From Mytilus trossulus (taxonomy: Eukaryota): a stretch of 64,000 bases of DNA. The stretch covers positions 54,560,001 to 54,624,000 of the forward strand of contig NC_086378.1 in NCBI RefSeq assembly GCF_036588685.1, in the 5' to 3' direction. Position numbers and translations under genes: made by a program. The stretch's first letter is position 1. The number at the start of each line of letters is the position of its first letter. This document shows, in pieces, positions 8,421-50,797 of this stretch. A model generated the notes under the pieces. It did not search any database. It worked only from the letters and a program-made list of their open reading frames with translations, and was not told the origin of the DNA.

Positions 8421-8780
8421 ATGAGGATTTCCACTCTTTTAACAGTTGCAATATGTATCATAATTACCATAACTTCTATAATGGCACAATTTAATGTCGA
8501 CATTGCTGGTGGCGGCGGCGGCGGCGGCGGTGGACCTAACGCTCCAGGCGGGAGAGGAGGAGATGTAATTACAAACATAAGAATTAATGGAGGTGGAAGA
8601 TTCTTTCGTGGGGGAGGTAATGATCAAGGCGGAAGAGGAAACCAAAGAGGCAATGGAAGAGGAAATAATAGAGGAAACGGAAGAGGAAATAGTAGAGGAA
8701 ATGGTAGAGGAAATAATAGAGGAAATGGTAGAGGAAATGGAAGAGGGAATGGACGTGGTAAAGGTAAAGGAAGAGGTTGA
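8421..8780 (+). CDS. Secreted Gly-rich cationic protein, paralog 1 (119 aa; 1 G9 module; RGN(G/N/S) repeat tail)
   Basis: Acceptor ttttttttcAG (8410-8411) 9 nt before ATG 8421; hydrophobic signal peptide MRISTLLTVAICIIITITSIMA; module NVDIA-G9-PNAP-GGRGG-DVITNIRI; TGA 8778-8780; AATAAA at 8797. The ORF-track start (8376) is intronic. Confidence 0.88.
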   Translation: MRISTLLTVAICIIITITSIMAQFNVDIAGGGGGGGGGPNAPGGRGGDVITNIRINGGGRFFRGGGNDQGGRGNQRGNGRGNNRGNGRGNSRGNGRGNNRGNGRGNGRGNGRGKGKGRG

Positions 8781-16354: not shown

Positions 16355-16903
16355 ATGAACTGTTCTATCGTTTTTTTGATAGCTTCAATATCTATTGTGT
16401 ATTACATCAACTCTGTTTCTGCCCAAGTAAATGTCGACATAACTGGTGGCGGAGGAGGCGGCGGTGGTGGTGATCAAGCACCTGGCGGTAGAGGTGGCGA
16501 TGTCAATACTAAGATTGTCATAAAAAAAGGTAGAGGAGGAAAAAGAGACAAAATTAAAGTAAACGGAAAAACAGTTGGGAAAGGAGAAAATGCAGGTGTT
16601 ATAAAAGTAAATGGAAAAAAAGTTGATATAGGAGGAAAAACAGGTATAAAAGTAGACGGAAAAGGTGTTATCGGAGGTAGAGGGAGAGGACAAGTTGGAC
16701 AGAGAGGACCAGTTGTAGGGAGAGGACAAGTTGGAGGGAGGGGACCAGTTGTAGGGAGAGGACAATTTGGAGGCAGAGGACCATTTGTAGGGAGGAGACA
16801 AGTTGGAGGACAAGGACTAGGGGGACTTCTATTAAACGGACTAAGAAGACAAGTTAGAAAGTTACTGGGAAATGCTGTTAGTCCAAGGGTTAGACGATTT
16901 TAA
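16355..16903 (+). CDS. Secreted Gly-rich cationic protein, paralog 2 (182 aa; 1 G9 module; IKV(N/D)GK and GRGQVGGRGPVV repeats)
   Basis: Polypyrimidine tract plus AG (16344-16345) 9 nt before ATG; signal peptide ending VSA|Q; module NVDIT-G9-DQAP-GGRGG-DVNTKIVI; AATAAA at 16924. Confidence 0.9.
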   Translation: MNCSIVFLIASISIVYYINSVSAQVNVDITGGGGGGGGGDQAPGGRGGDVNTKIVIKKGRGGKRDKIKVNGKTVGKGENAGVIKVNGKKVDIGGKTGIKVDGKGVIGGRGRGQVGQRGPVVGRGQVGGRGPVVGRGQFGGRGPFVGRRQVGGQGLGGLLLNGLRRQVRKLLGNAVSPRVRRF

Positions 16904-24936: not shown

Positions 24937-25341
24937 ATGAACTGTGCAACCATTATTGTGATAGCTTCGATATCTGTTGTATTTTACCTCAACTCAGTAA
25001 CTGCTCAAGTAAATGTCGACATAACTGGTGGCGGAGGAGGCGGCGGTGGTGGTGATCAAGCACCTGGCGGTAGAGGTGGCGATGTCAATACTAAGATTGT
25101 CATAAAAGGAGTTGGAAGAGGAGGTATAAAAGTAAACGGAAACGGAGTTCGACAAGGAGGTAAAGGCAGATTAAATAATAAAGGTAGAAGACGAGGAGGA
25201 CAAAACATCGGGTTTGGAGGAAGAGGACAAGTTCGAGGGAGAGGACAAGTTTGGGGGCGAGGACAAATTCGAGGACTAGGACGAGGCGGGGGTCAGTATA
25301 GAGGATCACTAGGACATGCTGGTGGATTTAGACGTTTTTAG
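24937..25341 (+). CDS. Secreted Gly-rich cationic protein, paralog 3 (134 aa; 1 G9 module; GRGQ(V/I)x repeats)
   Basis: Acceptor AG 24926-24927, 9 nt before ATG, with near-identical context to paralog 2; signal peptide ending VTA|Q; module identical to paralog 2; ends RRF*; AATAAA at 25361. Confidence 0.9.
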   Translation: MNCATIIVIASISVVFYLNSVTAQVNVDITGGGGGGGGGDQAPGGRGGDVNTKIVIKGVGRGGIKVNGNGVRQGGKGRLNNKGRRRGGQNIGFGGRGQVRGRGQVWGRGQIRGLGRGGGQYRGSLGHAGGFRRF

Positions 25342-32975: not shown

Positions 32976-33437
32976 ATGAAAGTTGCAAACGGTTTATTAA
33001 CAATCCTTATCTTTTACAATTGTTGTTCTGTGCTGATCTGTGGACAGAAAAGTCACAATAATGGTTTAAATTTGAATATTTCTGGAGGAGGGGGTGGAGG
33101 AATTGGAGGAATTGGTCCCGGGGGAGACGGTGGAAGCGTCATCACTAACCTGAATATCAAGAAAATAAAAAATGTTCGCAAGAATAAAGGCGACAGACAA
33201 AAGATTAAGTTAGCAAACGGGACAACCCTTGAAGGATTTAATTTAAATATTAATGGCGGCGGAGGTGGTGGCGGCGGTGGTCCTGGAGCAGGAGGCGATG
33301 GTGGAGATGTAATTACTAATGTTAATGTGGGAAAGATGAAGAATGTTGATAAGATTAAACCGTGGAAGAAAAAGAAAGACAAAAAAGACAAAAAGAAGGA
33401 TAAAAAAGATAAAAAGAAAGACAAAGAAACAAAATAA
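32976..33437 (+). CDS. Secreted Gly-rich cationic protein, paralog 4 (153 aa; 2 G9 modules; KKD-repeat tail)
   Basis: Signal peptide MKVANGLLTILIFYNCCSVLICG; two modules 57 aa apart; Lys/Asp tail; candidate acceptor AG 32904-32905; AATAAA at 33480 and 33551. Confidence 0.88.
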   Translation: MKVANGLLTILIFYNCCSVLICGQKSHNNGLNLNISGGGGGGIGGIGPGGDGGSVITNLNIKKIKNVRKNKGDRQKIKLANGTTLEGFNLNINGGGGGGGGGPGAGGDGGDVITNVNVGKMKNVDKIKPWKKKKDKKDKKKDKKDKKKDKETK

Positions 33438-33821
33438 ACTAAAGAATTACGGTGAACAGCATTATAATAGCAAAAGAGCAATAAATCAGATTTTAGATAA
33501 AAAAAAAAATTAAAGAATTACGATTGGTGTTGATAAGGAAATATTATATGAATAAAGATGTAATTACACACGTCTTTATTATTTCTCTATTGACTGAGAT
33601 TTGAGACAAAATAAATTCGATTGCTAATATATTGTTTATATTTGCCTTATGTTAGATTCGACCGTCCTATATATAACAAGGACACTTAACAAATTTAAAT
33701 TCAAATCTTTATTGTCATTACACTACATATTTATAGTATGTGACAAAGCATAACAAAATAAAAAGAAACAATAAAGTTAACGAACACATGTTATAGTTCT
33801 CATAGTTCATATACTTTTTTT

Positions 33822-34158
33822 TAACTCACATTGACCTAAACGTCAACGTGAGCTTTTCACGATACTTGGCAACCGTCGTCTGTCGTCAGCGGTCGTCATT
33901 AACTTTTACAAAAATCTTCTTCTCTACTGAGACAAATTTAACAAAACTCTGCCAACAATCATTATTGAGGTATATATTTTAAAAAAAGTGTCCGATGACC
34001 CTGCTTGCTTACCAACAAGGCCGACATGGCATAAAAACAGAACATAGAGGCTTTTAGTTATTATCTCTGACACTAAAGCAAATGTTTGCATTATTTCTTC
34101 ATGCAACAATTGTTAACAAAAATATCGTGAGCGACACAGGATCCATGAAGCCTCTAGT
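33822..34158 (+). mobile_element. Short internally deleted HINE
   Basis: Diverged 5' end, (GTC)n tract and 3' end gtgagcgacacagg...agcctctagt as in 609-2410. Confidence 0.6.
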
Positions 34159-36512
34159 TTGTATACACGACCGGTTGAACAACATTCCTTTTAAGTAACG
34201 TTACCGTAAATATAAATAACATATCATGTTTACAATAAGTTACAAAGATTATGATATGAAACAGTTGATGGTACAAATGTAACTGTTAAATAAGTTTACA
34301 ACCATATCACTGTAGGCCTAGGACTGTTTGTTTCTCTTCTTTCACATTGATGACACAATAATGCTTTTTAATCTATAAAAACATAAGTTGAGTGATATTT
34401 TTTTTATTGAATTAAAGAACACAACCGTAGCTCCGTCATGCAAAAATTGTATTAGCTCTTTATTTTTGTATTGAATTATGTTACTAATAAATCAGAAAAT
34501 GCAATAAATACTTTTTGCCTCCGAACTCTAAAGTTTCACTTTTCCTCCGTCTTCGTTTTTTACCTCTCTGTTTCTTTCTAAATCCTACAAGTGCAGCTAT
34601 TATCAAAGAGAGTTAAAATTATAAAAGGGACATTAAAACTCCTAAGTCAAAATTCAACTTACTGCGACATGGCTAAAAAAGAAAAACAGACACACAACAG
34701 TGCTTGCACAGAACACAGCACAGACCCTAGAGACTGTTTAACACGAACCACAACAAAAACTTGGATGACCTCAAGTACAGCAGAAAGGTAAGTAGATACT
34801 ACTCCAAATATGGCAGATCGTCGTGCAGCTCATGGTAATATTACAAATCCTGTAATAAGCTTATTCTGTGCGTCTCATTTGGGGAAAACAAACAGGATTA
34901 CATTTAGTAAGACATTTGGAAAATTTCTGCCAGCATCTTTGAAACTGATATTCCATAAATGGGAACCAACTCGTGGTGGCTACCGTAAATTTTACGAAGT
35001 GATAATTTCAACTTCAACACTTGAAGCTCTTGTTTTGATAGCTTCCTTATAAATAATAATTTATCAAATTGAATATTTCATATTCATTTTAGAAATTATA
35101 AATCTATATAAAGGCAAAAGTAGTATACCAATGTTCAAAACTCATAAATCGACAGAAAAAATAAACAAATTCGGGTCACAAACCAAAACCGAGGAAAACG
35201 CATTAGACAAAATCCTATCAGAATAACAAATATAACATCAAAACTAAAAACATGAATTTGGGATAGAAAAGTACCGTGACACGTCTTATGTGAATTCACA
35301 CTCAAATATAAGAGGAAAAAACGACACAGAATAAACACAACGTTAAAATGTAACACACAGACACGAACTATAATATAACAATGACCATATTCCTGACTAT
35401 ATTATAGACTAGTTGATTATCTAATGTGATTTTAATATCAAATTGTCAACATGCAGGAGAGGACTTCATAAGTGGGTAAAACTTGTGACTGATCCTTTAA
35501 AATGAACACAAACCTTTTTATTAAAAACAACTTATATAAAAACTTTCATAGCTGACTATGCAGAATGGGCGTTACTTATTGTCGAAGGTAGTCTGGTGAC
35601 CTATAGTTGTTACTTTCTGTGTCGTGTGGTCTCCTTTGAAAAGTTGTCCTATTGACAATCATACCACATCTTCTTTTTCATATGGAAAACTATTTTGCAT
35701 TTTAACTGATTGTATGTGCTTCCAATGTAATTTGAATATTGGGACCGTCAGATTAAACTAATAAATGCAAGGGAACGAAGGCACAAAATGATAAAATATT
35801 CACAATGATGATCTATCTATTTTCAAGTCCAAGTATTATTAAGGTATCTTCTCTTGTTTCATCTAAATATTCTTAATTTTTTTCCGGCGTTATTCAAATT
35901 TCAAATGGATTTCAAGACTAAAAAGAATATTACAATTTTGGGATAATTTGAGTTTTCTCTTCCACTTATGATATAATTTGCCTCATTCCCTGAGTTTTAA
36001 ACACATCCTTGGCTTTCACATATTCAACTCTGGTGAAGGTAAGTCAAGAAAAGCGGTTCTGGCGCATGCAATTGATATTGTTGCTTTTATTTTTATACAG
36101 CAGTGCTCCTAAGAACTTTTCTTGATTTACCTTTACCAGAACGGCATCGCTGCTTGTGAACTGGCTTCATCCGAGTCTATCATCAGCTCAGAAGTTAGTA
36201 CAGAGTTGCAAACATTATTTAAAACCACTCTTTATAATATTGTCCGTTAAAAAGTTCTTTCAGTTCCCTTAGTTAAAGTTGACCCTAAATGGATTTCGCT
36301 TTATTTTGATTTTTTTAATTTGGTCATAAAGCTCCTCAGTTGTTTGCGTTTTTATGCATCCTCGTCTTTCAAATGTTTGCTATTGAGCGTTCTTTGTAAA
36401 GGTAAATCAAGAAAAGTGCTTAGGACCACAGGTTCATGTCTGTGGAATAATATCAAACATATAAAAATGAGAAGACGTGGTATGATTCCCAATGAAACAA
36501 CTTAAGAAATAG

Positions 36513-36660
36513 TTCCTTCATGTCATGCTCTATGCTCATTTTAACATGGGTAGGCATTATATTTGTCGATATTTTACACTGAGCGTTAGCGAGGTGTAAA
36601 ATGTGGTCAAATATAATGCCTACCCATGTTAAAATGAGCATAGAGCATGACATGAAGGAA
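36513..36660. repeat. Perfect 53-bp-arm inverted repeat (palindromic non-autonomous element)
   Basis: 36513-36565 is the exact reverse complement of 36608-36660; the spacer also pairs (attttacac/gtgtaaaat) around gagcgttagcgag. Confidence 0.85.
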
Positions 36661-37184
36661 TAATTTCGATTCTAATAGGACAAATGCAGTATTTTTATAG
36701 GTCGAAGCGTAAGAAAATACCGTAAACACTTTTGGCTTTTCTCGTTTCCTCCCCGAGGAGTATGTGCATTACAATTCATATTTGATAAGTTTAAAAACCG
36801 CGATCAGGGTAAATATATGTTGTTTGATATAAATATATAATAACAGTTTATGCTAGCTGCTTAAATGTATACATTTTAAAGGATAACGATGGACATAACG
36901 TTTATACAAACAGTAAGGTCGTGCGCATGTGTCAAACATATTTTTTATGCTCATTAGAACACGGCTTTGTTAACAAAGCGTAATAAGGACGTCATATTAG
37001 AATCTCCATTAGAGACCAAAATGACATAATAAATAGACCTAGATTACTCTCAGGTCGGACGTCTGAGCTCGTCGCATATAGAAAAATAGATATTTGCCCA
37101 TCCAAAAAGGATGCGCTGCTTCGTTCCTTCTGGAGACTTCTGATTGCATTAGATCCATACAAATCGGACCTCAATTTTTTCATT

Positions 37185-37790
37185 TTTTATTTATATTTAT
37201 TCATTTATGTAAGTTTCATCAACCTGCCTACCTTTATTTTCTCACATTTGGACAGTTTCGCAGTGAACAATCGTTGTGTACCAGAAAAATATAATAAAAA
37301 TTTACAAAAAATCAGGCTTAACTTATCAAATCGATATACGAAAAGGTATACATTTGACAAAAACACGGACCGGATATTGCAAGATATTTATACACTCCTT
37401 ATCGCATAAATCACAAATTCTTTCAGATCTATCAATAGAAAAAATCTACCAGTCTCAATTGGCAACTTGTGACTTCCACATCTGCATTTAATAATATTAT
37501 ACCTCAAATCCGGTGGGAATACCGAGAGATACTTCTCAAGACCAAATTCAGTCTTATAAATTATATAATTAATACACACAGGGGAGTAAAAAATTTATGC
37601 TTTCCAAATTTCAACAAATTTTTCATGAAGAACTTGTTTAACTTGTCTTGACAGAATAACATTTCTTTCAACATTTTGGTTATTCCAACAATGAGTATAA
37701 CCACATTCAAGTAAAATTTCTTTGATACATGATGACCATTTTAAGTGATACACATCACCTTCGTCAAGTCTATTTAACATCTCATATGCA
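37185..37790 (-). mobile_element. 3' fragment of a non-LTR retrotransposon (LINE) ORF2, frameshifted
   Basis: Minus-strand pieces KWSSCIKEILLECGY..W, YKTEFGLEKYL, RCGSHKLPIETGR, ERICDLC resemble the C-terminal region of invertebrate LINE RT ORFs; A-rich tail near 37185-37205. Confidence 0.65.
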
Positions 37791-39336
37791 GTCAGGATTA
37801 TAATACTTCGTCAAAATTATCTCCCCATTACGCCGCTTTTTTTTATGAATATAAACATGGAATTCAATTGTAGTGATGAAGCGCCGTCAATTTCATGAAT
37901 TTAAATCTTGAAAACCGATCAATTTATTCACATAGTATTCTTACGATCCTTTACTTATGTCAGTTGTGTTTTTAAAAACGAATGTATGGACTTGCGCATC
38001 TTCTAATGTTCTTTTAGGCATTTTGATCAGCTTGAAACTATTGTCTGATCGGTTGTAAGGGATACTTTTGAAAGATCAAAAATTAAAAAAATACCTGGAA
38101 GGGCAGAATAAAAAAAATAGATGTAAAGATTAATAACCATAGATAACACATACTTTAAAAAATGATGTCATTCGAACACGCCTTCTCTATCATTGTCTAT
38201 TGTTATGACTCATTAGAAAGTTGGTTTACTTAAACCATATATTTACTCTTTTAGTACTGTTACATTTTGATATATGTTTGTATCAACCTTAAGTCTATAT
38301 ATACATGTATTTATTGATAATAGAATCTGAAGCGAGATGTTGTATAAACTATTTTTCTTTTTAAAAGTTTCAAGACAAAATAGTCAACTCAACCCCATTT
38401 GAACAAAAAAGGTGTACTCCACTTTCTCTTCCCGATGATGCAATTATTGGATATTTTGAGAATTTTTTCAAAAAAGACTTTAACCGGGGACAGAGATACA
38501 AATAAATGCCATTTCTTTTGCTTGATTTGAACTGAATTTCAGCCTGGATGAGAATTATCTGTCTATTTTTTTTAAATGCTTCATGATATATTTGAAAATA
38601 TGAATACGATTTGTTATTCTTATACTAAGACTGCTTTAACATAACGCGAAATTATGTTAATTTTGATACGATTCAACAGCCCAACTCAAAGTTAAGGTCA
38701 ATACACCTTATCGCTTATCCCGGCCTACCAGGCCGCTTGAAATTTTGACGTATACAACAATCACTTTTCCATTGTGGCGTCAGATTTTTTTTACGGGAAC
38801 CTGTGTGATATCCAGTAATGGCGGACAAATAGAGATACGGTGTATTGTTCAATTATTTAGACCTAATGTTTCCCTGTTTTAGCTCACCGTTGGAAAGTAT
38901 GCATTCTGATATGTAGCTTTTTGTGACAGTGTTGCTATTTTAGAGTAAATAAGTCTTGAATCTTGAAATCTGGGGATGTTCAGTTTTAAAATAAAAACAA
39001 TCCAAACATGTTTTCATGGTTTATAATTAGTCGAAAAACTGTTTTCTTAATATATCAACTATCATACTTTCAGTTTTTCACTGTATGGTTTGATGACTAT
39101 GCTTTTTTATTGGTTTGTTTTCTTCGCTTTTTAAGAGTGGTTGTTTTAATTAAAAACGCAAATTAGAATCAATTATTCTCTAACTTTAAAAAAAAACATA
39201 AACATTTTGTTGTACTTGCATAATACCGTTGACGACACAAAACAACATCAACACACATAGCATTATAAAATTACTCAAAGAAATATTGCAAAAAGTTCTT
39301 TTCAGCATATAGACATAATTTATCATTTTGAAGTAC

Positions 39337-39438
39337 ACAAGGATACATGCACCATTTGTATGCATGTTATAAAGTAGATATAGTTCAACATTTTACATTT
39401 ATTGCTCGGCGTAAGAATCAAATATTAAAGGTAGGTTA
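39337..39438 (+). promoter_or_regulatory. Putative core promoter and short non-coding exon 1 of paralog 5
   Basis: ACAAGGATAC (39337), TATAAA (39368), AG|GTAGGT donor (39431); matches the equivalent block upstream of paralog 6. Confidence 0.5.
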
Positions 39439-40292
39439 AACAACTCTGTAATAATAATGATTTAAATTTGTATAATTGAATAAACATTTCCATTCAAACC
39501 ACCAAATAAATAAATATACATGTATGTATTAGATGAAAACCAATCCAGAATAGCTATTTGGACGCAAAAAGTTTTTGTTTATTGTTTATTGCAGTTTGAC
39601 GATAAGTTTCTTTTTTTTTTTTTGCAATTTTGATTTTAATAAATATTTTGTATATTGATATTTGCCAAATATGGATGCCAATGATATGCGAAGATTCTGA
39701 AAATAAATTGTTTTAAAACATGTGAATACCGCTTCTTGTTTCATATTATTTCACAAAAAAATCGTTAATCATTGGTTGATTTGAAGTAATTTCAAGATTT
39801 CGTTTCTAACAATACATTTTCTCCCGGAATACCATGGCAGCTTTCAAGATTGTTGAAAAATTCAATAAATATATATTTATTTCTAGGAAATGCTTTTATC
39901 AACAAGATAAAAAAATCTAGCTAAAAAAATATGGCTAAAAAAATCTAAATTAAGTAGAAGTATTTGAAGTTCCCAGTTTTGTTTACTTTTTTGCAAATTA
40001 AACATAAATATAAAACAGACAGAAATATGACTCATTCGATGTGTTAAAACTTTTGATTTAGCCATTTGATAATATTATACTTTCCGTTTTGAATTTTTCT
40101 TGGAGTTCGGTATTTTTTCTCTTCTAGTTTTACTCGGAATCAATTGATCTTAGATATCTGCTCAGTTAAAAGAGTTATTGGATACACAGTTTAATTTTGT
40201 TCACCTAATAACAAAGCTAAAACAAAAACTAAACAAAAGAAATATGTTTGTACGCAACTATTGTGTGTTTTCCTTTCCTTTTTGTAGAAAAG

Positions 40293-41090
40293 ATGAACAT
40301 CTCAATAACTGACATCGGGCTGATATGGATCCTTTGCATTTATAACTATTGTTCATGCCATGGATATTATGGAGATCATTATTATAGAGGACAGGGACGA
40401 TATTCAAGGCAAAAACCGCAATCATACGGTAGAGATTTAGAAAGTCCATTTAAAACGGAAGCCATAGAACAAAGTCAATTAATCAAAGACTTAAAAGCAC
40501 GTGTTAGCAATTTAGAAAAAGTTATCCGTGATTATAAGGATGGAAACATTGATATTAATATCAAAGGAGGAGGGGGTGGTGGTGGAGGCGGACTCGAACC
40601 AGGAGGAAATGGTGGAAATCTAACGACTCATTTATTTATAAAGAAAATCAAAACGGTTCATACTAAAGATGGAACAAAAGTCATTATAAAGCCTGGTGAT
40701 GGGCGAACATTACGAGCGCTTAAACTAATGATCGAAGGAGGAGGTGGCGGGGGTGGGGGCGGAATAGGAAAAGGCGGCGACGGTGGAAGTATATTTACAA
40801 ACTTGACAATCAAAACATTTAAGACTGTATTTAGAGATGGAATAAATGTCACTACTGCAGAGGGTATAAATCCACTAGAAGGACTCGGTTTGAACATTAA
40901 AGGCGGTGGCGGAGGTGGCGGCGGCGGTACAGGCCCTGGTGGCGATGGCGGTGATTTGATTACATCTATTGTCATAGAGAATGTAAAGGATGTAACTATT
41001 AATGGAACTTGGACAAAGGAAGATAGGAAGGCATGGAAATTAATGAAGAAGTTACGGAGGCAAAAGAATAAACAGAAAGGAAATAAATAG
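40293..41090 (+). CDS. Secreted Gly-rich cationic protein, paralog 5 (265 aa; 3 G9 modules)
   Basis: Acceptor tttgtAG (40286-40287) 5 nt before ATG 40293 (ORF-track start 40248 is intronic); signal peptide; Tyr/His-rich N-terminus; short heptad segment; three modules at 57 and 55 aa spacing; K/R tail. Confidence 0.9.
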   Translation: MNISITDIGLIWILCIYNYCSCHGYYGDHYYRGQGRYSRQKPQSYGRDLESPFKTEAIEQSQLIKDLKARVSNLEKVIRDYKDGNIDINIKGGGGGGGGGLEPGGNGGNLTTHLFIKKIKTVHTKDGTKVIIKPGDGRTLRALKLMIEGGGGGGGGGIGKGGDGGSIFTNLTIKTFKTVFRDGINVTTAEGINPLEGLGLNIKGGGGGGGGGTGPGGDGGDLITSIVIENVKDVTINGTWTKEDRKAWKLMKKLRRQKNKQKGNK

Positions 41091-44000
41091 GACCTGATGA
41101 GTCGTTCATTGATTTTTTTATGTTGGTTCTAATGGTGTGCTATATAATTCACTACTCTCCTTTGTTAAATATATATCTTTGCCCACAATTAAAACATAAG
41201 CATGAAATGGTGTTTATTTTATTTTAAAATTGATTTGCAACTTACATGTTATTAGATTCCAATTGTCCCCGTTATCATTCGTATTTAAAGATTTTTAAAA
41301 TACTTCAGATTTGTTATTTTTTTTCTTTCTTATTGTTATACACCCAGCAACAAATGGAAATATCAATTGACCTCTGTTTGTTCCAAACGGGTTTTTTGTT
41401 CATCTTTGTAATACGAAATGCTCAAACCCAAAGTTTAAAAAGTACGGATATATAATATTAAATGAATGAGAAGCAATACATATTATGATAATAAACTTGA
41501 AATTAGAAGCTGAATCCTTCAATGGTCAGGTTTGACTGTGGGCATTGTAACTATTCAACAGTAAGTGGATGCAAAGCAGCCAACCATAAAAAAAAACAGT
41601 ACTATTGTATGAGAGAGATTTTGCAAAACCTCAGTTCATTTTTTACTCAATATGCCTAATTGAGCAAGGAACTGTGCTTTTTATCCTGAAGTTGGGTTTC
41701 TTTAAACAAATGTACGAAATAAAAAAAACAGATGTCCATTTATAACAAATCCAAAGATGTTCAATCTGTGGGTTTTCATAACTAAAAAATGACAAAATAC
41801 AGAGCATTTAACACAAAGACATTTTGTTATTGTGAAATATAGCTTGAAAAACAATACAAAGAATATGAGGATTTTTTGATAAAAAGAGTTACTGACTTTC
41901 TTTATCTTATTACACAATGGGTATATTTGATATGTTTGGGGATACAGGAACAATCACTATATATTTTTAGATAATGTAGCCTAACAACATTTTGAACCAT
42001 CAACATGCATTCATTAGGATTTTTATTGATATGGCAAATATATTTGACATATATGATAAAAACAAAAGCCAACTCAATATGTGTGGTTATCTTTCCATAC
42101 AAAACCATACACAAAACACAATAAGTACTGTTGTCGTGTGCAGAGAATTACCTTAATCCCATTACTTTGATATATGCAGACTCGTTAAAAAACTATTTTT
42201 CTAATTTTAATACTCAAAAGCAACTTAATTCACCACTAATGTTTCCTGATGATAGGAACGTCCAACTCAATTTGCCGGGTTCGTTAAAGTTTGTCTGCAG
42301 GAAAAAAAAACAAAATAGATTTGAAACCTACGAATATACCGTAACAACACATACTTTCTTCAATACCTAGATGGTTTACCTAGAAGTCTGGACATATATT
42401 GAAATATAATTGATAATCATAAGATACCAAAGAGACAAAACTCATTAAGTCCATTAAGAAAACCAAAAACTCTTTGTGATCGCAGCTGTTCTTGGAGGGT
42501 GAACATATTTTGTTCCATTGCATTAAGCGTCATGTTTCACATAGTAAAACTTATTAAAGATACTAAGCTTATTATTTGCCACACCAAACAAGTGTTTCAT
42601 CTTCATGAAACTTGGCAATGATACTCGAAGATATACAAAGTAAAGGCATAATAAAATACGAAATTTTAGAACATAAAACATGTGTGTATTACAAAAGGCT
42701 AGTGTAATAAATTCATGAGGGTAGAAAACTTTAGTGTTTAATAAGCTAATATCCTGTGTTATCAACAGTAAAAAGTAGGAAAACAAAAATACCGAACTCC
42801 GAGGAAAATTTAAAATATAAAATCAGTTAACAAAAGGCAAAATCGAAAGCTCAAACACATCAATCGGAGTAACAACTGTCATCATATTCCTGACACTTGG
42901 TACACTTCTTATGAAAAAACCTGGTTTCATAGCTAAACCTCTCATTTGTATGACAGTCGCATGAAATTTCATTTTATTGGCAATGATGCGTTAACCAAAC
43001 AAACTGACGTAGCATGTAAAAATGTCAACAAAGACAAATTAGCATAAAACTAACATATCAATGGTCAGTGCAAAATCTCTGATAGTTCTTGTCCGGGGAT
43101 GTTACAATCAAGGCAAAACGGACGAAAAGGTGATAAAGACAAGAGCAAAAGATCACAACATTTTAAACTGCCTCTGGTATGACAAAAAACGAATAAACTA
43201 TGAAAAAACACAGGTGTTTATACAACAGAAAACTAAAACAGAAAACTAAAAACTGAGCAACACTGTTAATACGAAAAACCAATGGTGATCACAGGTGCTC
43301 TGGTCCTGTTCTTCTTTTGACAATTGTCGGGTTGTTCATATTAAATACGTTGAAAAGTTATATTCAAGATATAATTCCTTCATGTCATGCTCTACGCTCG
43401 TTTAAATATGTGCAGGTATAATTCAGTTAAGATTTGATAATCTGAATTTATCTTTTTTTTCTGACAGAATCATGTTCCATTGGTATTCTTTATCATCCTG
43501 TCATAAAAGATATTCTATATGTAAAAAACTAATATTAAAACTATGCAAACTGGTACCAAATGCTGAACAAATCGCACCAAAATATTACAATGCAATGTTA
43601 GAGTCTAGATTAATCCTGTAAAAAATAATGGTATATCTCACAAAACTTTCATTATAACACTTCTTGTCTCATCTAATACTACTATCTCTAAGTCTATGGC
43701 TCGTATGAAGATTTCATCTCCCCCATATTCTCCTTTGTCACATATCATTTAATTACATTTATTGTAAATAAGGGATTTTTTCAACAATGTATTCTTTGCT
43801 GACCGATTGGTGAATTTTTCTACGTGTACATGATGTTTTGGTCTTTTAGGAACCAAAAGCAATTCTTAAATCGCACTTAACAGTTTTACACCTTTTCTTT
43901 CCGATTTTATTATGTTATATTTGTTATTCTCGTGGGATTTTGTTTGATGCTTGGTCCGTTTTTGTGTGTGTTACATTTAAGTGTTGTGTTGTTGTTCTCC

Positions 44001-44291
44001 TCTAATATTTAATGCGTGTCCCTCGGTTTTGGTTTGTTACCCCGATTTTTGTTTTTTGTCCATGGATTCATGAGTTTTGAACAGCGGTATACTACTGTTG
44101 CCTTTATTTATTGGGGGAAACATTCGTCTAATATTTTAACCATAATATAAATCTTTCTAATGAATTATACAACCATCTGATAGATTGCAATAGAATATTG
44201 CGAAAAAAAAATAACATCAGGTCATTGCTCTAAAATAAAGTGCATGAAGTTCCTTTGTTACTTAAAGTTTCAATTTTTCATTTTAATGTAA

Positions 44292-44405
44292 ACAAGGATA
44301 CACATTTGCACATACACTGTATATTTAAAGATATTTATAAGATATAGTGCATTTGTAATAAACATTCTATTGTTCTTCATAGGAAAAACCTAAACAGGTA
44401 GGTTA
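44292..44405 (+). promoter_or_regulatory. Putative core promoter and short non-coding exon 1 of paralog 6
   Basis: ACAAGGATAC (44292), TATAAG (44336), AG|GTAGGT donor (44398). Confidence 0.5.
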
Positions 44406-44938
44406 TACGTCTTTAAAACAATATCAAGATAAATTTGCTAATTAATAAAATTTGACCATGCATAGAAGGAAAATATTATCAACTGTTCTCAAAGATACGT
44501 TATTACAGATAACTGATATTTCTTTTCTGTAAAACCGTCTTCTCTTTTTTTTCCTTTTCGGAATAGTATATGATATAATACATAAAATTGAAAATAATGT
44601 TGGTGTCGTTAATTTTATTAATAAGAATGTGTTTATTTTTTCATCTCTTTACCATACAGAACTCGAATGTTATTGAGATAACTTACAATTGTCATATAGA
44701 ACTGCGAAAATGTGCGGAATAAAGCGCAAATAACGTTAAAAAAAGTATAAAATATTATCAAAACGCGCAAACATGACGCGACGTGATTTGACCTTTTGGT
44801 TGCTTCAATGTGTTTTATCATCAAATAATGTCGCCATTAACATTATACCCAATTTAAGACAGAAATAAAAATAAAAAAATAAAAAAAGTTTTTTTTAAGC
44901 ATTAATTTAGTTCGTTTCTATTTCTTCTTGCAGAAAAA

Positions 44939-45745
44939 ATGAACATCTCAATAATTTACATCAGTGTGATGTTTATCTTTGTTATTTATAACAATTGTTC
45001 AGGACATAGATCATATGCAGAAAACTATCGCCGAAGACACGGAAGACTACCAAGACATAGACCACGATCTAGAACTTTTGGAAGAAGATTAGGAAAGAAA
45101 GCAATACAAAAAAGTCTAGCTCCGAAAGAATTAGAAAGAACTTTAAGCAATACTGATCAGGTAGCACTTTCTAATATTGACAGAAATATCAATATGAATA
45201 TAAAAGGAGGCGGAGGTGGTGGCGGGGGAGGAATCGATCCAGGTGGAAATGGTGGAAATCTTACTACTAACTTGTTTATTAATAAAATCAAGACAATTCA
45301 TACCAGTGACGGAACAATAGTAAAAATAAAGCCTGGTGATGGACGAACATTAGAGGCACTTAAATTGATCATTGATGGGGGAGGTGGCGGGGGAGGAGGG
45401 GGGATAGGAAAAGGCGGTGATGGAGGAAGTTTATTTACAACCTTGACAATCAACAAATTAAAGACTGTTTTCAGAAATGAAGCAAATGCAACTATTGTTG
45501 AAGTTCAAAACCCTCTACGTGGACTCAGTTTGAATATTAATGGCGGTGGTGGAGGTGGAGGTGGGGGACCAGGTCAAGGTGGAGATGGCGGTGATTTGGT
45601 TACAAACATTGTCATAGGAAAAGTTAAGACAGTCACAAAAAATGGTGCTAGAAGAAGAAAAAATAAAAAGGATCGGAAATTAAAAAGGATGTTGAAGAGA
45701 AAAAGGAATAACAAAAACAAGATTAAGCCATTACCTAATTACTAG
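44939..45745 (+). CDS. Secreted Gly-rich cationic protein, paralog 6 (268 aa; 3 G9 modules)
   Basis: Acceptor ttgcAG (44932-44933) 5 nt before ATG; signal peptide; Arg-rich N-terminus; three modules (57/55 aa spacing); K/R tail; AATAAA at 45850. Confidence 0.9.
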   Translation: MNISIIYISVMFIFVIYNNCSGHRSYAENYRRRHGRLPRHRPRSRTFGRRLGKKAIQKSLAPKELERTLSNTDQVALSNIDRNINMNIKGGGGGGGGGIDPGGNGGNLTTNLFINKIKTIHTSDGTIVKIKPGDGRTLEALKLIIDGGGGGGGGGIGKGGDGGSLFTTLTINKLKTVFRNEANATIVEVQNPLRGLSLNINGGGGGGGGGPGQGGDGGDLVTNIVIGKVKTVTKNGARRRKNKKDRKLKRMLKRKRNNKNKIKPLPNY

Positions 45746-48700
45746 TAGTGATGTGACGGAAAATGACAAAATAATGTTATCAAGAGGATTCATCTTTTCC
45801 TAAAAATATCAACAAAGGCTTAAAAATTTTGATGCTAAATTTCAAGCTAAATAAAATATGTACGAATCAAAATTACACAAAAAATAAACCGAAATTTAAC
45901 GACAAAAATACTTCATCATTAATGAATTCAGAACTTGTACTTATATGATCTGTTCTATTCTGAAAACGTATTATTTATATGCCAGCGTTTCTTACTTTAA
46001 ACTAATTTGTCTCAAATTAAGACAACACTTAGCCATACAATTTGTTACTCAACTATTGCAGCAGAAAGTTTCGTTAAAAGAACATATTTCTAATCTATTT
46101 TCATGTTTGCTTATGTTCTTACATTAATTTACAAGTGTGAAACGTTTTATTTGATTTGTATGATATAAAGCGACTGTAACCCCAATTCTTGTTTAAATAC
46201 CATTTGTCTCTGTCATGGTATAGTGATTCTTTGTCGGTTTGTTCTGTGCTGTATATCTTTGCTGTTATTATTTCATAAAGTTAGGTTAAACCGCTTTCAT
46301 ATATACATGTATATCATGTTCGTACACAGATGAAATAGTTTATAAAATTTATTCTATTTGGTTACATATTTGTTTCATAATGAAACGCCTCATTGGAAAC
46401 GACTTAAACTAATAAAATATCTGTAAAATCTTTGTTGTTTGCTTTTTTCATATGAAAAAAACTGTGATTGGTCAATTTCCCTGCAGTACCAGAGTTATTA
46501 TGACCGGTTTTGCACGAAAGAGAGGTATACAACGTTAATAGTTAGTATGTGTAAAGCTCATGTGTGGAATTATACCCTGTATGAATATTTTTATAATTAC
46601 CTAATAGATGTGATAGAATTTAACTGTTATGAGTAATACAACATATTATATTGAAGCCAAAACAAGATCACTTATTTTTAGATCAAGTATTGCTGCCAAA
46701 ATGTTGTTCTCAAAACATAAAGTCAGAAACAAATCATAACTATTTCCAATATAAATTAAGTACTAAAACTTGTTAGAGAAGCCAAAAACATTCCCCCCTA
46801 ACTCAAAATTTAAAACATCGTTTCCTTTACAAAATGGCCATCCAGTTTATGGCCATGGTGTTTACATCTATTTTTGGTAATGATTCCTGTGGATATTTCT
46901 TATTCAGATCATTTCATAAAACGAATTTTAGGAAATTTCCCATCAATAATATGGAATTAAAATATTTGCGCCTGTCCTAAGTCAGAAATCTGATGAACAG
47001 TAGTTGTCGTTTGTTTTTATGTAATTTATACGTGTTTCTCGTTTCTCTTTTTTTTTTTTAAATAGACCGTTGATTTTCCCGTTTGAATGGTTTACACTAG
47101 TAATTTTGGGGCCCTTTATAGCTTTTTGTTTGGTGTGAGCCAAGGATCCGTGTTGAAGGCCGTACATTGACCTTTAATGGTTTACCTTTATAAATTGTTA
47201 TTTGGATGGAGAGTTGTCTCATTGGCACTCATGCCACATCTTTCTATAGCTTTTCATTTATTGTTCTGCTTTCCATTTGTTACTGTCTAGTATAAAAAAC
47301 AAAAGAAGACACGATATGTTAACCAATGAAACAACTTATTTCAATGACAAAATAAATTGTGTTTCAACAAAAAACGAAAAATGTGAAACAGACAATAAAA
47401 AATAAAATCACAAAAATACCGAACTCCTAGGTAAGTTCAAAAAGGAAATATCCAAGTCAAAAGGCAAAATCAAAAGCTCAAAATCATCAAACGAATGGAT
47501 AACATCTGTCATATTCCTGGCTTTGGTCAGGCATGTTCTTATGTAGAAAATAGTGGATTAATCCAACAACTTCTACTGTATTTCAAAATTCTCAATTGGG
47601 ACAGGAACTTAAGGAATGTATACATATGTGTTTAGCGCTGAGTCATGTCCGATCTGGGACATTGTTCAACATATGGAAACTGTCATGTTGACCACTGAAC
47701 ATTCAAATCTGTATTTGAAGTCACTAAAGTCTAGTTCAAAAGTCCATTTTTAAATTATTAATAAATAATGTTTTCATATATAAAAGGTGTCTATGTTTTG
47801 TTTTCTAGCCCTTTTTTCTATTTTCACCTGTCCATTTCAGTTATGTTTAATGAATGAAATGATTATTTGATTTTTGCTCATCTTTCCAACAAGAATCCCC
47901 TTATGACATTGTATCTTCATATTTTATGTGGTAAATTCAAAATTACATCTGTTACTAATTGTTCTCCCTAATTAGTTACTTGTTTCTCCTTTGTATTGCA
48001 GACGTTTTACAACTTACAGATCGGTCCGTTCATAACCTGTACATCAAGTTAATTTAATGACCAGATATTTAGGCAATTTTATATTACCTAGTAATAGTTT
48101 TGTTTACTGCTCCGGTCGGCCTTTAGACCAAAGTCTGGTTAACACGGAAACAATAATTGTATCAAATATTTATACAATGAAACACATGTAGAGCTAAATG
48201 TGGTATGAAGAGTTCTAAACACCATTACAAGTCAAATACAGATATGTCATTAGTTCTCTTGTTGTTTTTATGCATGATTTATCATTTAAAAATAAACAAA
48301 GAGACACCACGTGTTAAAAAATATTTAGTATATAATGATATTCAATTTTTTTTAACAGAAAAAAACAAATAAAAGGTAAGTAATTATACTACATCTCTAT
48401 CTAGTTTCGAATCAATTTCAATTCCGAATATTCTTACAGACATGTCTGCTTTGAATGAATTAGACCAGTCATACAAACATTACCGAAGGCACTCGAATAC
48501 TCGTACACACATTGACGTTTTGTTGATGGAATTGAGCCATTCATTCAGATACCATAATTTTAACCGTGCAAGGTGATATCATTTCTGTTCATTTCGTTTT
48601 ATGTAAATCGGACTCGTATGAGACATGTTAAGAAACAGAGCTTTAGTCATTTATTAACATATCTTCATCGTGAGAATATTCTTAATAGTTTATTTTTAGA

Positions 48701-49459
48701 AATTATAATTTCTGGACAGTATAATTTACAATGATTTGATACATACATTTTAATATATATTCAAAATCCGTTTTTAAAAATATTATTTTCACAACGTTGC
48801 TAGTGATGAGCAATCGAAATTCACGGTTCTAAGTATTTGAAAGTGCTTACAAAGGAAAACGAAGAAAATGTATATTTAAACACTTGACGCATCTATTCTT
48901 ATGTATTCCTAAAGGTAAAAGTGCATAACAGCTGCTGCCAAAAAAGACTCATTTAAAATGTCGTCATTAAGATATTTGAGAAACGGAAAAAAGTCCTAAC
49001 CCCAAAACAAATGATAATTATGTAGTTGTTGATATAATATATACATTGTGTGTTATTAGATTTTAACAAATTTAAACTATATTAAATTGTTATTTTAAGT
49101 CAGATCTGTTAAATTGTTTTAATAATGTCATCATAGTAATATCATATTTGTGCAGTAAAGTTGTCTTGTTTTATCATGCTATCCATTTATCAATCGTGTT
49201 GGTTGCAATTTCAAGGCCAAAAATATTAGGGTGACAGACCACAGATGTTAAGATTAAAACATGTAACCGTCTTTATTATTTAATAATTAGACGCTGCATT
49301 CATATACGAAGGTGTCTGAAAGTGCATTTTATTAGATTTTGTGTGGTCTGAAATCATTAGACACTGGAATATTCGTCCGATCTGTAATTTAATCGCGTTT
49401 GTCATCATAACGATGTTGATATTTAGCAGGATATCCCTTTCTTGCTGACTGACATGTTT

Positions 49460-49800
49460 AGGCTCAACCACTATGTCACTGCCACTACTGTTGGAGTCTG
49501 TATCCCCGAGAGTTATCAACACTTCTGTTTTACATTTAATTTCATTGATAAGATCATAAAAATAAATTAGCTGTTAACAAAACTTTGTTTTTTTTTGACA
49601 TACTGAAGAGTCTTTATCCCAGAAATTGATAATTTCAGCTGTATTTAATAAAACCTATCAGAATCTATGGTCTCAATACTCTTCCACTTCGTACTTTATT
49701 TTGCCTTTTAACATTTTTATTTTAGCGTAATTGGAGAGTATATTATTTACGAACGCATGTCTTACATACAACATATTGAGCCTGGGATCTATGTTTAGTA
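49460..49800 (+). mobile_element. Highly decayed retrozyme-like unit just upstream of paralog 7
   Basis: Patchy similarity to the 59761-60437 unit (gccactactgttgga, ccccgagagttatca, ctcttccacttcgtactt); ribozyme core lost. Confidence 0.45.
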
Positions 49801-49930
49801 TAGTCAAGAGTGCATTCGATTTTCCCAGAATTTAATTTATCTTGTTTTGTATCTTTTTAACCGATAAGTGAGATTTAAACATTGATTAACTTCTGTCGTA
49901 TACGTTGTTTATATTTCTCTTTCAGAAAAG

Positions 49931-50797
49931 ATGAACCTTACAGTTAGTTATGCCGTCGTGTTTTGGTTACTTGTCATTGATGACAATTGTTCAGCAGAGC
50001 TAACAGATGACAATAAAGTTATAGAAACGAGAGAAAAAGACACGGAAAAAGAAGCAAAAGTAAAGTTTCAACCATTGAAAACAGATTTTAAAAATGCTAT
50101 TAGTAATGCTCAAGAGGTCAACCATGATAATAATAAAGGAAATTATAGTTTGAATATTAAAAGGGGTGGTGAGGGCGGGGGTGAAGGAATCAGTCCAGCT
50201 GGAGATGGTGGTAGTATTAGAACTAATTTTGTTATCAAGAAAATAAGGACGATTCATACAAGTGAGGGATCAAAAACACTTATCAAAACAGATGATGGAC
50301 GAAAATTAACTTCACTTAATTTAGTTATTGACGGAGGAGGTGGCGGCGGTGGAGGTGGAGTAGGAAAAGGCGGAGATGGAGGAGGGGTAATAACAAACCT
50401 GTTAATCAGGAAAATTCAGTCTGAGCATAGAAAAGGGTCAAAGGTCACTACTTCCGGATCTGAAAGCCCTCTACATGGAGTGAGTCTTAACATTAAGGGT
50501 GGTGGTGGCGGAGGCGGCGGTGGACCAGGTCCGGGAGGCAAAGGTGGAAACCTTGTTACAAATGTTGTTATAGGGAAACTACAGCAAAGAGATTCTAGAA
50601 ATGGGTCTGTGGAAAGAGCAAATCAGAAGAAAAAGCAAATTGTTAAAGACGCTAGAAATGGTACCGTTGAAAGAGTAGATCATAAGGAAAAGAAAATTGT
50701 AAAGAACGCGAGAAAGAAACTAATGAAAGCAATGAAAAATCAAAAAAAGAAAAGGAAACGGATCGAAAAAGAAGGCAAAAAGACTAGAGAAAAATGA
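49931..50797 (+). CDS. Secreted Gly-rich cationic protein, paralog 7 (288 aa; 3 modules, first one substituted)
   Basis: Acceptor ttcAG (49924-49925) 5 nt before ATG; putative signal peptide; modules at 57/55 aa spacing; long Lys-rich tail with a 19-aa internal duplication. Confidence 0.88.
   Translation: MNLTVSYAVVFWLLVIDDNCSAELTDDNKVIETREKDTEKEAKVKFQPLKTDFKNAISNAQEVNHDNNKGNYSLNIKRGGEGGGEGISPAGDGGSIRTNFVIKKIRTIHTSEGSKTLIKTDDGRKLTSLNLVIDGGGGGGGGGVGKGGDGGGVITNLLIRKIQSEHRKGSKVTTSGSESPLHGVSLNIKGGGGGGGGGPGPGGKGGNLVTNVVIGKLQQRDSRNGSVERANQKKKQIVKDARNGTVERVDHKEKKIVKNARKKLMKAMKNQKKKRKRIEKEGKKTREK

Follow-up and report, generated by a model that had tools for sequence, protein, structure and literature searches.

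A Mytilus-only cluster of genes for secreted basic proteins built from a conserved nine-glycine module, a possible polyglycine-II hairpin

The gene cluster

A stretch of 64,000 nucleotides from the mussel Mytilus trossulus (NCBI RefSeq assembly GCF_036588685.1, contig NC_086378.1, positions 54,560,001 to 54,624,000 of the forward strand) was analyzed. It harbors tandem genes that encode a module with a tract of nine glycine (Gly) codons. This whole stretch is called the window, and positions are counted from its first letter. The window is AT-rich (GC content 0.28-0.39), does not contain any N and sits on a 91.4-Mb Mytilus contig. Its + strand carries seven tandem open reading frames (ORFs), located 4.6-8.6 kb apart, with 14 modules in all: one in each of paralogs 1-3, two in paralog 4 and three in each of paralogs 5-7. 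Judged by eye, every one of the seven genes has an open frame and a hydrophobic start resembling a signal peptide. The isoelectric points (pI) of the whole precursors range from 9.65 to 12.0, and their tails are rich in Lys or in Arg/Gly.

All coding exons and modules lie on the + strand. Translation of the paralog 1 ORF (8421..8780, pI 12.0) revealed a signal peptide, one module (p1m1, 8487..8612; Gly tract 8508-8534) and an Arg/Gly/Asn-rich tail. Paralog 2 (16355..16903, pI 11.8; module p2m1, 16424..16549; Gly tract 16445-16471) and paralog 3 (24937..25341; module p3m1, 25006..25131; Gly tract 25027-25053) each consist of a signal peptide, one module and a basic Gly-rich tail; paralog 3 is an exact match to P0033. 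Paralog 4 (32976..33437), identical to P0008, has a signal peptide, two modules and a Lys/Asp tail. In its first module (p4m1, 33063..33188) position 7 of the tract (33084-33110) is Ile; the second (p4m2, 33234..33359) has its Gly tract at 33255-33281.

The three remaining genes encode a longer protein, in which a pro-region lies between the signal peptide and three modules followed by a basic tail. In paralog 5 (40293..41090), with a variable pro-region, the modules are p5m1 (40545..40670; Gly tract 40566-40592), p5m2 (40716..40841; 40737-40763) and p5m3 (40881..41006; 40902-40928). Paralog 6 (44939..45745) is built likewise, with p6m1 (45185..45310; 45206-45232), p6m2 (45356..45481; 45377-45403) and p6m3 (45521..45646; 45542-45568). 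Paralog 7 (49931..50797) has an acidic/basic pro-region and a long basic tail; its first module (p7m1, 50141..50266) carries a substituted tract (50162-50188) with Arg, Glu and Glu at positions 1, 4 and 8, followed by p7m2 (50312..50437; 50333-50359) and p7m3 (50477..50602; 50498-50524).

A profile of the 14 modules was searched against the 1.3-Gb genome and found exactly 15 sites, 14 in the window and one upstream; therefore, the entire family is this single cluster. The upstream site is an eighth member of 87 amino acids with one module and a Lys/Gly tail (G000:C6:54555395-54555658, 4.3-4.6 kb before the window), which is closest to paralog 1. The family thus counted comprises eight tandem genes for small, secreted and strongly basic proteins and is found only in Mytilus.

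Anatomy of the module

Each of the 14 modules opens with a short beta strand, which leads into the nine-codon Gly tract; a turn of 2-4 residues, an xGGxGGx segment and a long beta strand complete it, and one module takes about 55 residues. A regular-expression scan and translation proved the tract coordinates of the preliminary description of this DNA right, together with its spacings of tract starts, 171 then 165 nt in paralogs 5-7 and 171 nt in paralog 4. In the 14-module alignment, the first part is an alternating strand closing with an invariant Ile. Between the tract and a Pro, Lys, Gln or Ala lies the turn, with two residues or, in paralogs 1-3, three; GG-x-GG-x comes next and leads into a strand in which a Thr is invariant and an Ile nearly so. 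Columns without variation are the Ile that precedes the tract, the tract Gly, GG-x-GG and a Thr. The non-Gly residues of the second Gly segment recur with a period of three. They are polar or charged, namely, in order, Pro/Lys/Gln/Ala, Asn/Asp/Lys/Arg and Asn/Ser/Asp/Gly. In the multi-module proteins, two more short strands bridge to the next module.

The 151-codon core of paralogs 5-7 showed a ratio of nonsynonymous to synonymous substitution rates (dN/dS) of 0.19-0.39 at a dS of about 0.8, without any indel. In contrast, the region between signal peptide and core showed a dN/dS of 0.68-1.95, with indels. This difference suggests, on the level of sequence, that the core is folded.

Paralogs 2 and 3 share 102 perfectly identical nucleotides (16424-16525 versus 25006-25107), which correspond exactly to the mature N-terminus plus module; the signal-peptide codons on the 5' side and the tail on the 3' side differ at many sites. 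This block looks like the trace of a gene conversion confined to the module.

Conservation of the glycine tract

The scan of the + strand detected 13 runs of GGN codons, starting at 8508, 16445, 25027, 33084, 33255, 40566, 40737, 40902, 45206, 45377, 45542, 50333 and 50498. The run at 33084 consists of six codons, an ATT and two further GGN codons. Translation reveals one more tract at 50162, the substituted tract of paralog 7. The sole other GGN run of at least five codons in the window is one of five on the - strand. Translation confirmed nine tract positions in all 14 modules, with nine Gly in 12 of them; the Ile of paralog 4 and the Arg, Glu and Glu of paralog 7 stand at the positions reported before.

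The tracts contain 40 GGT, 37 GGA, 34 GGC and 11 GGG codons. The longest run of one codon is 2-3 in 13 of the 14 tracts and 6 (GGC) in paralog 1, which bears out the earlier remark that the codons are mixed and unlike those of a slipping repeat. Among the 12 all-Gly tracts, third codon positions differed in 71% of comparisons and first and second positions in 0%. At the DNA level the tracts are thus close to saturation, and at the protein level they have stayed the same; the tract is under selection and is not slipping.

In other Mytilus, 73 modules from 30 proteins could be scored; these proteins are alleles and orthologs, many of them >90% identical to one another and hence not independent. 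Nine positions were kept in 72 of the 73 modules, as nine Gly in 61 and as nine residues with one or two substitutions in 11. The exception belongs to a chimeric M. edulis gene model. Variable tract length, regarded beforehand as evidence against a rigid fold, was not found among the scored orthologs and alleles of other Mytilus. The first module of the paralog-7-type protein of M. californianus, missed by the anchor of the scoring script, is also nine long and has three substitutions. The eighth gene, just outside the window, has 11 consecutive Gly, as the first two of its four turn residues are Gly, and the distance from its strand to the PGG motif is the same as in the other modules. Thus, the proposed invariance holds for the spacing and for the orthologs; it is not strictly a run of nine that is invariant.

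Orthologs and alleles contribute further substitutions at tract positions 1, 4, 7 and 9, so that substituted positions are overall 1, 4, 7, 8 and 9, with both end positions well represented. Positions 2, 3, 5 and 6 are never substituted in the 14 window modules and in the 72 intact ones of other Mytilus. Nearly all substitutions affect either the last position of a tract or module 1 of paralogs 4 and 7, and the middle tract of the three-module proteins is all Gly in every sequence examined. Substitutions confined in this way to tract ends and first modules agree with a location at the edge of a helix bundle. Three of the four substitutions in the window had been placed on one face of a helix with three residues per turn. 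The arithmetic of that argument is correct, but it carries no significance once the substitutions of orthologs and alleles are added. Substitution periodicity became uninformative with these data and was dropped as support for such a helix.

Relatives and databases

The sole relatives of the window proteins were found in M. galloprovincialis, M. edulis and M. californianus. Word-indexed searches returned six matches for paralog 6, including its own protein, and seven for paralog 7, all of them from Mytilus. An exhaustive phmmer search over 1.84 billion representatives gave three clusters and no homolog outside Mytilus, and a search for the combination of signal peptide and module of paralog 3 gave only paralog 3 itself among 93 candidates (proteins of 74-235 amino acids). 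No Pfam family matched any of the seven window proteins, the only row being a chance SNARE match at an expectation value (E) of 0.45. Among the best 60 of 97 matches of phmmer against all PDB sequences, only low-complexity rows such as linkers of single-chain variable fragments (scFv) appeared. The 14-module profile, searched against the same sequences, gave GTPBP10 as its best row, which at E 0.12 is not significant.

The orthologs bear automatic public names, namely cabeza-like, IcsA autotransporter-like, PE_PGRS10-like and uncharacterized, which mirror glycine content only. Two gene models are faulty. P0003 of M. californianus fuses a paralog-6-type with a paralog-7-type gene, and P0005 of M. 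edulis joins the front of one gene to the back of the other via a junk segment.

Literature searches that paired Mytilus or mussels with polyglycine, PE-PGRS or polyproline-II (PPII) bundles found no paper on the family; supplementary proteome lists of byssus, shell and haemolymph could name members. In two papers that catalogue or predict PPII helices or bundles, mussel and mollusc terms were absent. What is new is best called a sequence family with its module architecture; what is known is the rare class of glycine-rich PPII bundles.

Transcription

Among 24 sequencing runs listed, 14 from six studies contain at least part of paralog 6, and one contains at least half of the sampled words; none of the 24 runs is recorded as RNA, and the contig sets are small, with 51-82 million letters. 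Contigs of three runs (X1-X3) were placed on 40100-46000. They covered the coding exons of paralogs 5 and 6; between these genes, only two repeat-like blocks attracted contigs. A likely splice acceptor AG follows a pyrimidine tract at 40286..40287 (+), 5 nt before the ATG of paralog 5, and contigs of X2 and X3 fit from 40286. The corresponding AG of paralog 6, likewise after a pyrimidine tract and 5 nt before the ATG, lies at 44932..44933 (+), with contigs fitting from 44931-44941. One X3 contig at the paralog 5 acceptor carries 92 extra letters that do not fit the adjoining DNA. Because the contigs cover exons, skip intergenic DNA and start at an AG after a pyrimidine tract, they probably represent spliced mRNA with a non-coding first exon, and the genes are probably expressed. 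Ten runs of the same species label (X15-X24) contain next to none of the paralog 6 words, which is compatible with tissue-restricted expression.

The two blocks between paralogs 5 and 6 (42661-43054 and 43843-44236) showed very high summed contig depth in all four runs, together with partial contigs and numerous loose ends; they resemble dispersed repeats or pieces of transposons. In addition, X1-X3 contigs leap from the Gly tracts at 40566-40592 and 45542-45568 into collagen-like Gly-X-Pro and other Gly-rich sequence. These jumps are probably joins in the assembly graph via shared GGN words. Byssal collagens are produced in the foot. The loose ends of X1 and X3 in collagen-like sequence may point to foot tissue as the source, and show only that the transcripts share a library. 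Papers on Mytilus mantle and on Mytilisepta tissues mention glycine-rich proteins, and the portions of their text at hand make no link to this family.

Structure prediction

The paralog 6 protein was used for structure prediction. AlphaFold2, applied to the core alone with a 10-row alignment, gave a best model with a predicted local distance difference test score (pLDDT) of 65.6 and a predicted template modeling score (pTM) of 0.60. A second model was obtained for the full-length protein. In both, the flanks of the Gly segments form strands. Alternating hydrophobic and polar residues had suggested such strands before, and this alternation is seen in the alignment. The Gly segments are neither helix nor strand according to DSSP, which does not name PPII. 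With block pLDDT values of 53-76 in the core model, they do not fall below the strands.

Both best models were aligned exhaustively with VIA-align to 48,161 PDB chains, and the best 50 rows were shown. For the core model, rank 1 was taken by the snow flea antifreeze protein (2pne_A) with a Z of 7.7 and a root-mean-square deviation (rmsd) of 1.9 Å over 66 of 81 residues. The same chain ranked first for the full-length model (Z 6.4, rmsd 2.0 Å, 66 of 81 residues). Rank 2 was a nine-helix springtail protein (7jjv_B) with a Z of 5.8 for the core and 4.4 for the full length, and the third row reached only 3.4 and 3.5, respectively. Acetophenone carboxylase (5l9w_B), another PPII-bundle protein, was found with Z values of 2.8 and 2.6, and the phage protein gp38 (6f45_D) with a Z of 2.3 and an rmsd of 5.4-5.6 Å at ranks 40 and 43. 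The snow flea match has weight because of the gap to the third row, the nearly complete coverage of the target, the low rmsd and the recurrence in the second model, and also because this rare fold class had been proposed beforehand. Three comparators had been named at that time. The snow flea protein proved to be the closest; the glycine-rich domain of ALK/LTK and gp38 were not.

The proposed fold and its alternatives

We estimate a probability of about one half that the module is a polyglycine-II (PGII) hairpin on a beta scaffold and that the three-module proteins form a bundle like that of the snow flea protein. Within a module, the two Gly segments would then be an antiparallel pair of left-handed PGII helices, which are of the PPII type. 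The six helices of a three-module protein would pack into a flat two-layer bundle as in the snow flea antifreeze protein, and the flanking strands would form a beta sheet holding this bundle. Neither the variable pro-region nor the tails rich in Lys or Arg/Gly would belong to the fold, and the basic tails probably bind anionic partners. In solved bundles, according to the available parts of PMC8409303 and bioRxiv 10.1101/2023.11.25.568672, helices with more neighbors are richer in Gly. The Gly9 helices are likely to be buried or at an interface, covered by the sheet or by another copy, because all their faces are free of side chains, as is usual in solved bundles for helices with many neighbors. 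With such an interface, the one- and two-module paralogs could complete a bundle by self- or co-assembly.

The models partly support the PGII hairpins on a beta scaffold that the preliminary description had put forward: both best models match springtail PPII bundles, with a confidence that is low to modest and by prediction only. A number of points weigh against the proposal. The full-length model, calculated from a 7-row alignment, had a mean pLDDT of 44.6 and a pTM of 0.40, with the core at 45-60; the four other core models reached pLDDT values of 54.0, 46.7, 43.9 and 36.8, and a stored ESMFold model 0.53. Low confidence had been announced as a sign against the fold. It was found in part, as confidence was low for the full length (44.6) and modest for the core (65.6), and the Gly segments were about as confident as the strands. 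Furthermore, the two AlphaFold2 alignments had only 7 and 10 rows, closely related to one another. AlphaFold2 has encountered the snow flea protein before, and its model may be a memorized structure instead of a signal from the family; the 38% identity to that protein is almost all Gly. The VIA-align note itself calls best Z values of 7-8 typical for models without a true match. Of the fold searches, VIA-align ranked the snow flea protein first, and Foldseek, run with both models on the PDB, had nothing to show at E ≤ 0.001, 7jjv_B appearing only at E 1.0 with a template modeling (TM) score of about 0.2. Finally, three solvent-exposed all-Gly helices would be unusual, and one-module proteins would be unable to form a bundle alone. 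In the ESM Atlas, no feature match was obtained, and the structure neighbors were unrelated flavin adenine dinucleotide (FAD) enzymes with TM scores of 0.27-0.38.

Alternatively, the Gly tracts may be flexible, unstructured loops between ordinary beta hairpins; their fixed length would be kept to set a span, or because the proteins work as an elastic, adhesive or condensate-forming low-complexity material. The low to modest confidence of AlphaFold2 and ESMFold, the lack of a fold match by Foldseek and the assignment of strands and coil only by DSSP, though DSSP does not name PPII, all agree with this explanation. The Lys or Arg/Gly tails resemble condensate-forming sequences described in the accessible text of PMC8409303. 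We nevertheless consider it unlikely. A flexible linker rarely needs nine Gly that never change at positions 2, 3, 5 and 6 in 14 window and 72 other modules, and the third positions of the codons compared have reached saturation. In the segment after the tract, a period of three residues is strictly kept, AlphaFold2 is about as confident in the Gly segments as in the strands, and the best model of either prediction fits onto a bundle of six PPII helices with an rmsd of about 2 Å. If the tracts were disordered after all, the absolute conservation of nine glycines would itself want explaining.

Stacking of the repeats as a cross-beta solenoid or a functional-amyloid-like fiber, with the Gly-rich segments as arcs between strands, appears improbable. 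The functional amyloid FapC (9u4u_A) was the best Foldseek row of both models (E 0.068 and 0.0089), a CsgA fibril was found with a Z of 2.4 for the full-length model in VIA-align, and alternating strands rich in Asn and Ile recur at a fixed period. However, TM scores of 0.10-0.15 and rmsd values of 18.7-20 Å show that FapC does not really superpose, arcs of 18 residues of almost only Gly are not seen in the solenoids listed, and the snow flea antifreeze protein stands far higher in the exhaustive alignment. That the tracts are slipping GGN microsatellites in chance ORFs or decayed genes, as the six consecutive GGC codons of paralog 1 and long opposite-strand (poly-Pro) ORFs across the tracts might indicate, is refuted by the short codon runs (2-3) in 13 of 14 tracts, the signal-peptide-like start and open frame of every gene, the tract length kept in orthologs of three other named Mytilus species, the core dN/dS of 0.19-0.39 and contigs of probable RNA runs that lie on coding exons and not on intergenic DNA.

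Possible roles and significance

Glycine-rich PPII helix bundles are a rare third kind of protein architecture. To our knowledge, they have been found only in a handful of families that are not related to one another, namely springtail antifreeze proteins, Obg, gp38, acetophenone carboxylase and ALK/LTK. If the proposed PGII hairpin is correct, the mussel proteins would constitute a new PPII-bundle family, the unit of which is a Gly9 helix and a GGx-type helix clamped by two beta strands, used by nature in one, two or three copies. Such an unusually simple and modular block would offer protein designers a minimal natural unit, and structural biologists a test of how all-glycine helices are stabilized. 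Mussel biologists would obtain a handle on a lineage-restricted, secreted and highly basic gene family.

Composition, secretion, tandem expansion and the fast-evolving pro-region are the basis of two guesses on function. Tentatively, the proteins may be cationic surface-binding or host-defence effectors; with slightly more doubt, they may be a self-assembling component of an extracellular secretion. By analogy, they might also be a convergent mollusc counterpart of the springtail antifreeze proteins, with a flat polyglycine bundle that binds or organizes ice in freeze-tolerant intertidal mussels, which we regard as very improbable. From Mytilus physiology, a high-molecular-weight cryoprotectant has been inferred that was never identified, as stated in the available part of a survey (bioRxiv 10.1101/2021.08.30.458284); the terms "snow flea" and "glycine" are absent from the survey. 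If the role in ice binding were true, the family would supply this cryoprotectant.

Other features of the window

On the - strand, an ORF fragment at 63497-63757 matches the Pfam family AA_permease_2 with E 2.1e-10; it is probably, as the sequence match indicates, an exon of an amino-acid transporter gene that flanks the cluster on the opposite strand. An Rfam scan of the whole window at the gathering threshold gave 0 matches.

Comparison with known glycine-rich helix systems

The springtail antifreeze proteins (PDB 2PNE, 3BOG, 7JJV) provided the top two structural matches of both AlphaFold2 models. As modeled, the mussel core resembles the snow flea protein in having six antiparallel Gly-rich PPII helices with short turns. 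Both groups of proteins are small and secreted, and the mussel xGGxGGx segments have the three-residue period of the springtail proteins. The springtail proteins were absent at E ≤ 10 from the best 60 of 97 phmmer matches and from the module-profile search against PDB sequences. According to the portion of PMC8409303 at hand, the springtail bundles have Gly-X-X repeats in every helix and a flat, Ala-rich ice-binding face. In the mussel proteins, by contrast, half of the helices would be pure Gly9, an Ala-rich flat face is missing and the core does not contain Cys. Furthermore, 37-39 residues of beta strand lie between one of their helix pairs and the next, and the mussel proteins carry long basic tails.

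In gp38 of phage S16 (PDB 6F45), six to seven consecutive Gly form the central PGII helices, as reported in the accessible sections of PMC8409303 and bioRxiv 10.1101/2023.11.25.568672. Its bundle adjoins beta-solenoid layers in the same accounts, and the resemblance to the mussel proteins consists of Gly runs and a beta neighbor. The gp38 bundle has ten helices in three layers, whereas the mussel proteins have at most six Gly segments and no sequence match to it.

The ALK/LTK domain belongs to an animal extracellular protein, and its PGII helices are formed from Gly runs attached to a beta-sandwich. This glycine-rich domain is also described in the available part of PMC13243192. Neither Pfam nor the PDB sequences gave a match to ALK/LTK, and none of its chains occurred in the best 50 VIA-align rows of either model.

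The calcium-binding beta roll of RTX proteins is built from tandem GGxGxDxUx nonapeptides. In the mussel GGxGGx segment, Asp/Asn occupies, as judged by eye, the third or the sixth position, and the units do not follow one another in tandem; an RTX-type Pfam match was absent at E ≤ 1 from the seven window proteins.

In mycobacterial PE_PGRS proteins, GGxGGx repeats were modeled by AlphaFold as a bilayer of PPII helices, according to the available part of PMC13243192. NCBI has automatically named an M. edulis ortholog "PE-PGRS family protein PE_PGRS10-like". This name reflects composition and not homology. The window proteins have no Pfam match to the PE domain, and the mussel module has one GGxGGx unit, paired with Gly9, as opposed to the many repeats of PE_PGRS.

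The Obg fold (PF01018; PDB 1LNZ), which the preliminary description did not name, is by sequence the nearest local analogue. Obg and the mussel module share a local motif of strand, GG-rich segment, GG-x-GG-Asp/His-Val and strand. GTPBP10 is a GTPase of the Obg family, and its profile alignment mentioned above spans strand, GG-rich segment, GG-x-GG-Asp-Val and strand, and an Obg exon of the mussel itself carries the same local pattern. PF01018 gave no match at E ≤ 1 in the seven window proteins, and the same model finds the real Obg exons of the mussel; Obg chains were absent from the best 50 VIA-align rows of either model. Obg is a universal cytoplasmic domain with a GTPase fused to it, unlike the secreted Mytilus-only family, and the mussel Obg gene lies 18 Mb away. 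In the solved N-domain of Obg, a beta base carries two layers with six Gly-rich PPII helices in all, and beta strands are among the elements that connect the helices, as described in the parts at hand of PMC8409303 and bioRxiv 10.1101/2023.11.25.568672. The mussel family is no member of the Obg family, and the Obg N-domain is the closest analogue known for PPII hairpins seated on a beta base.

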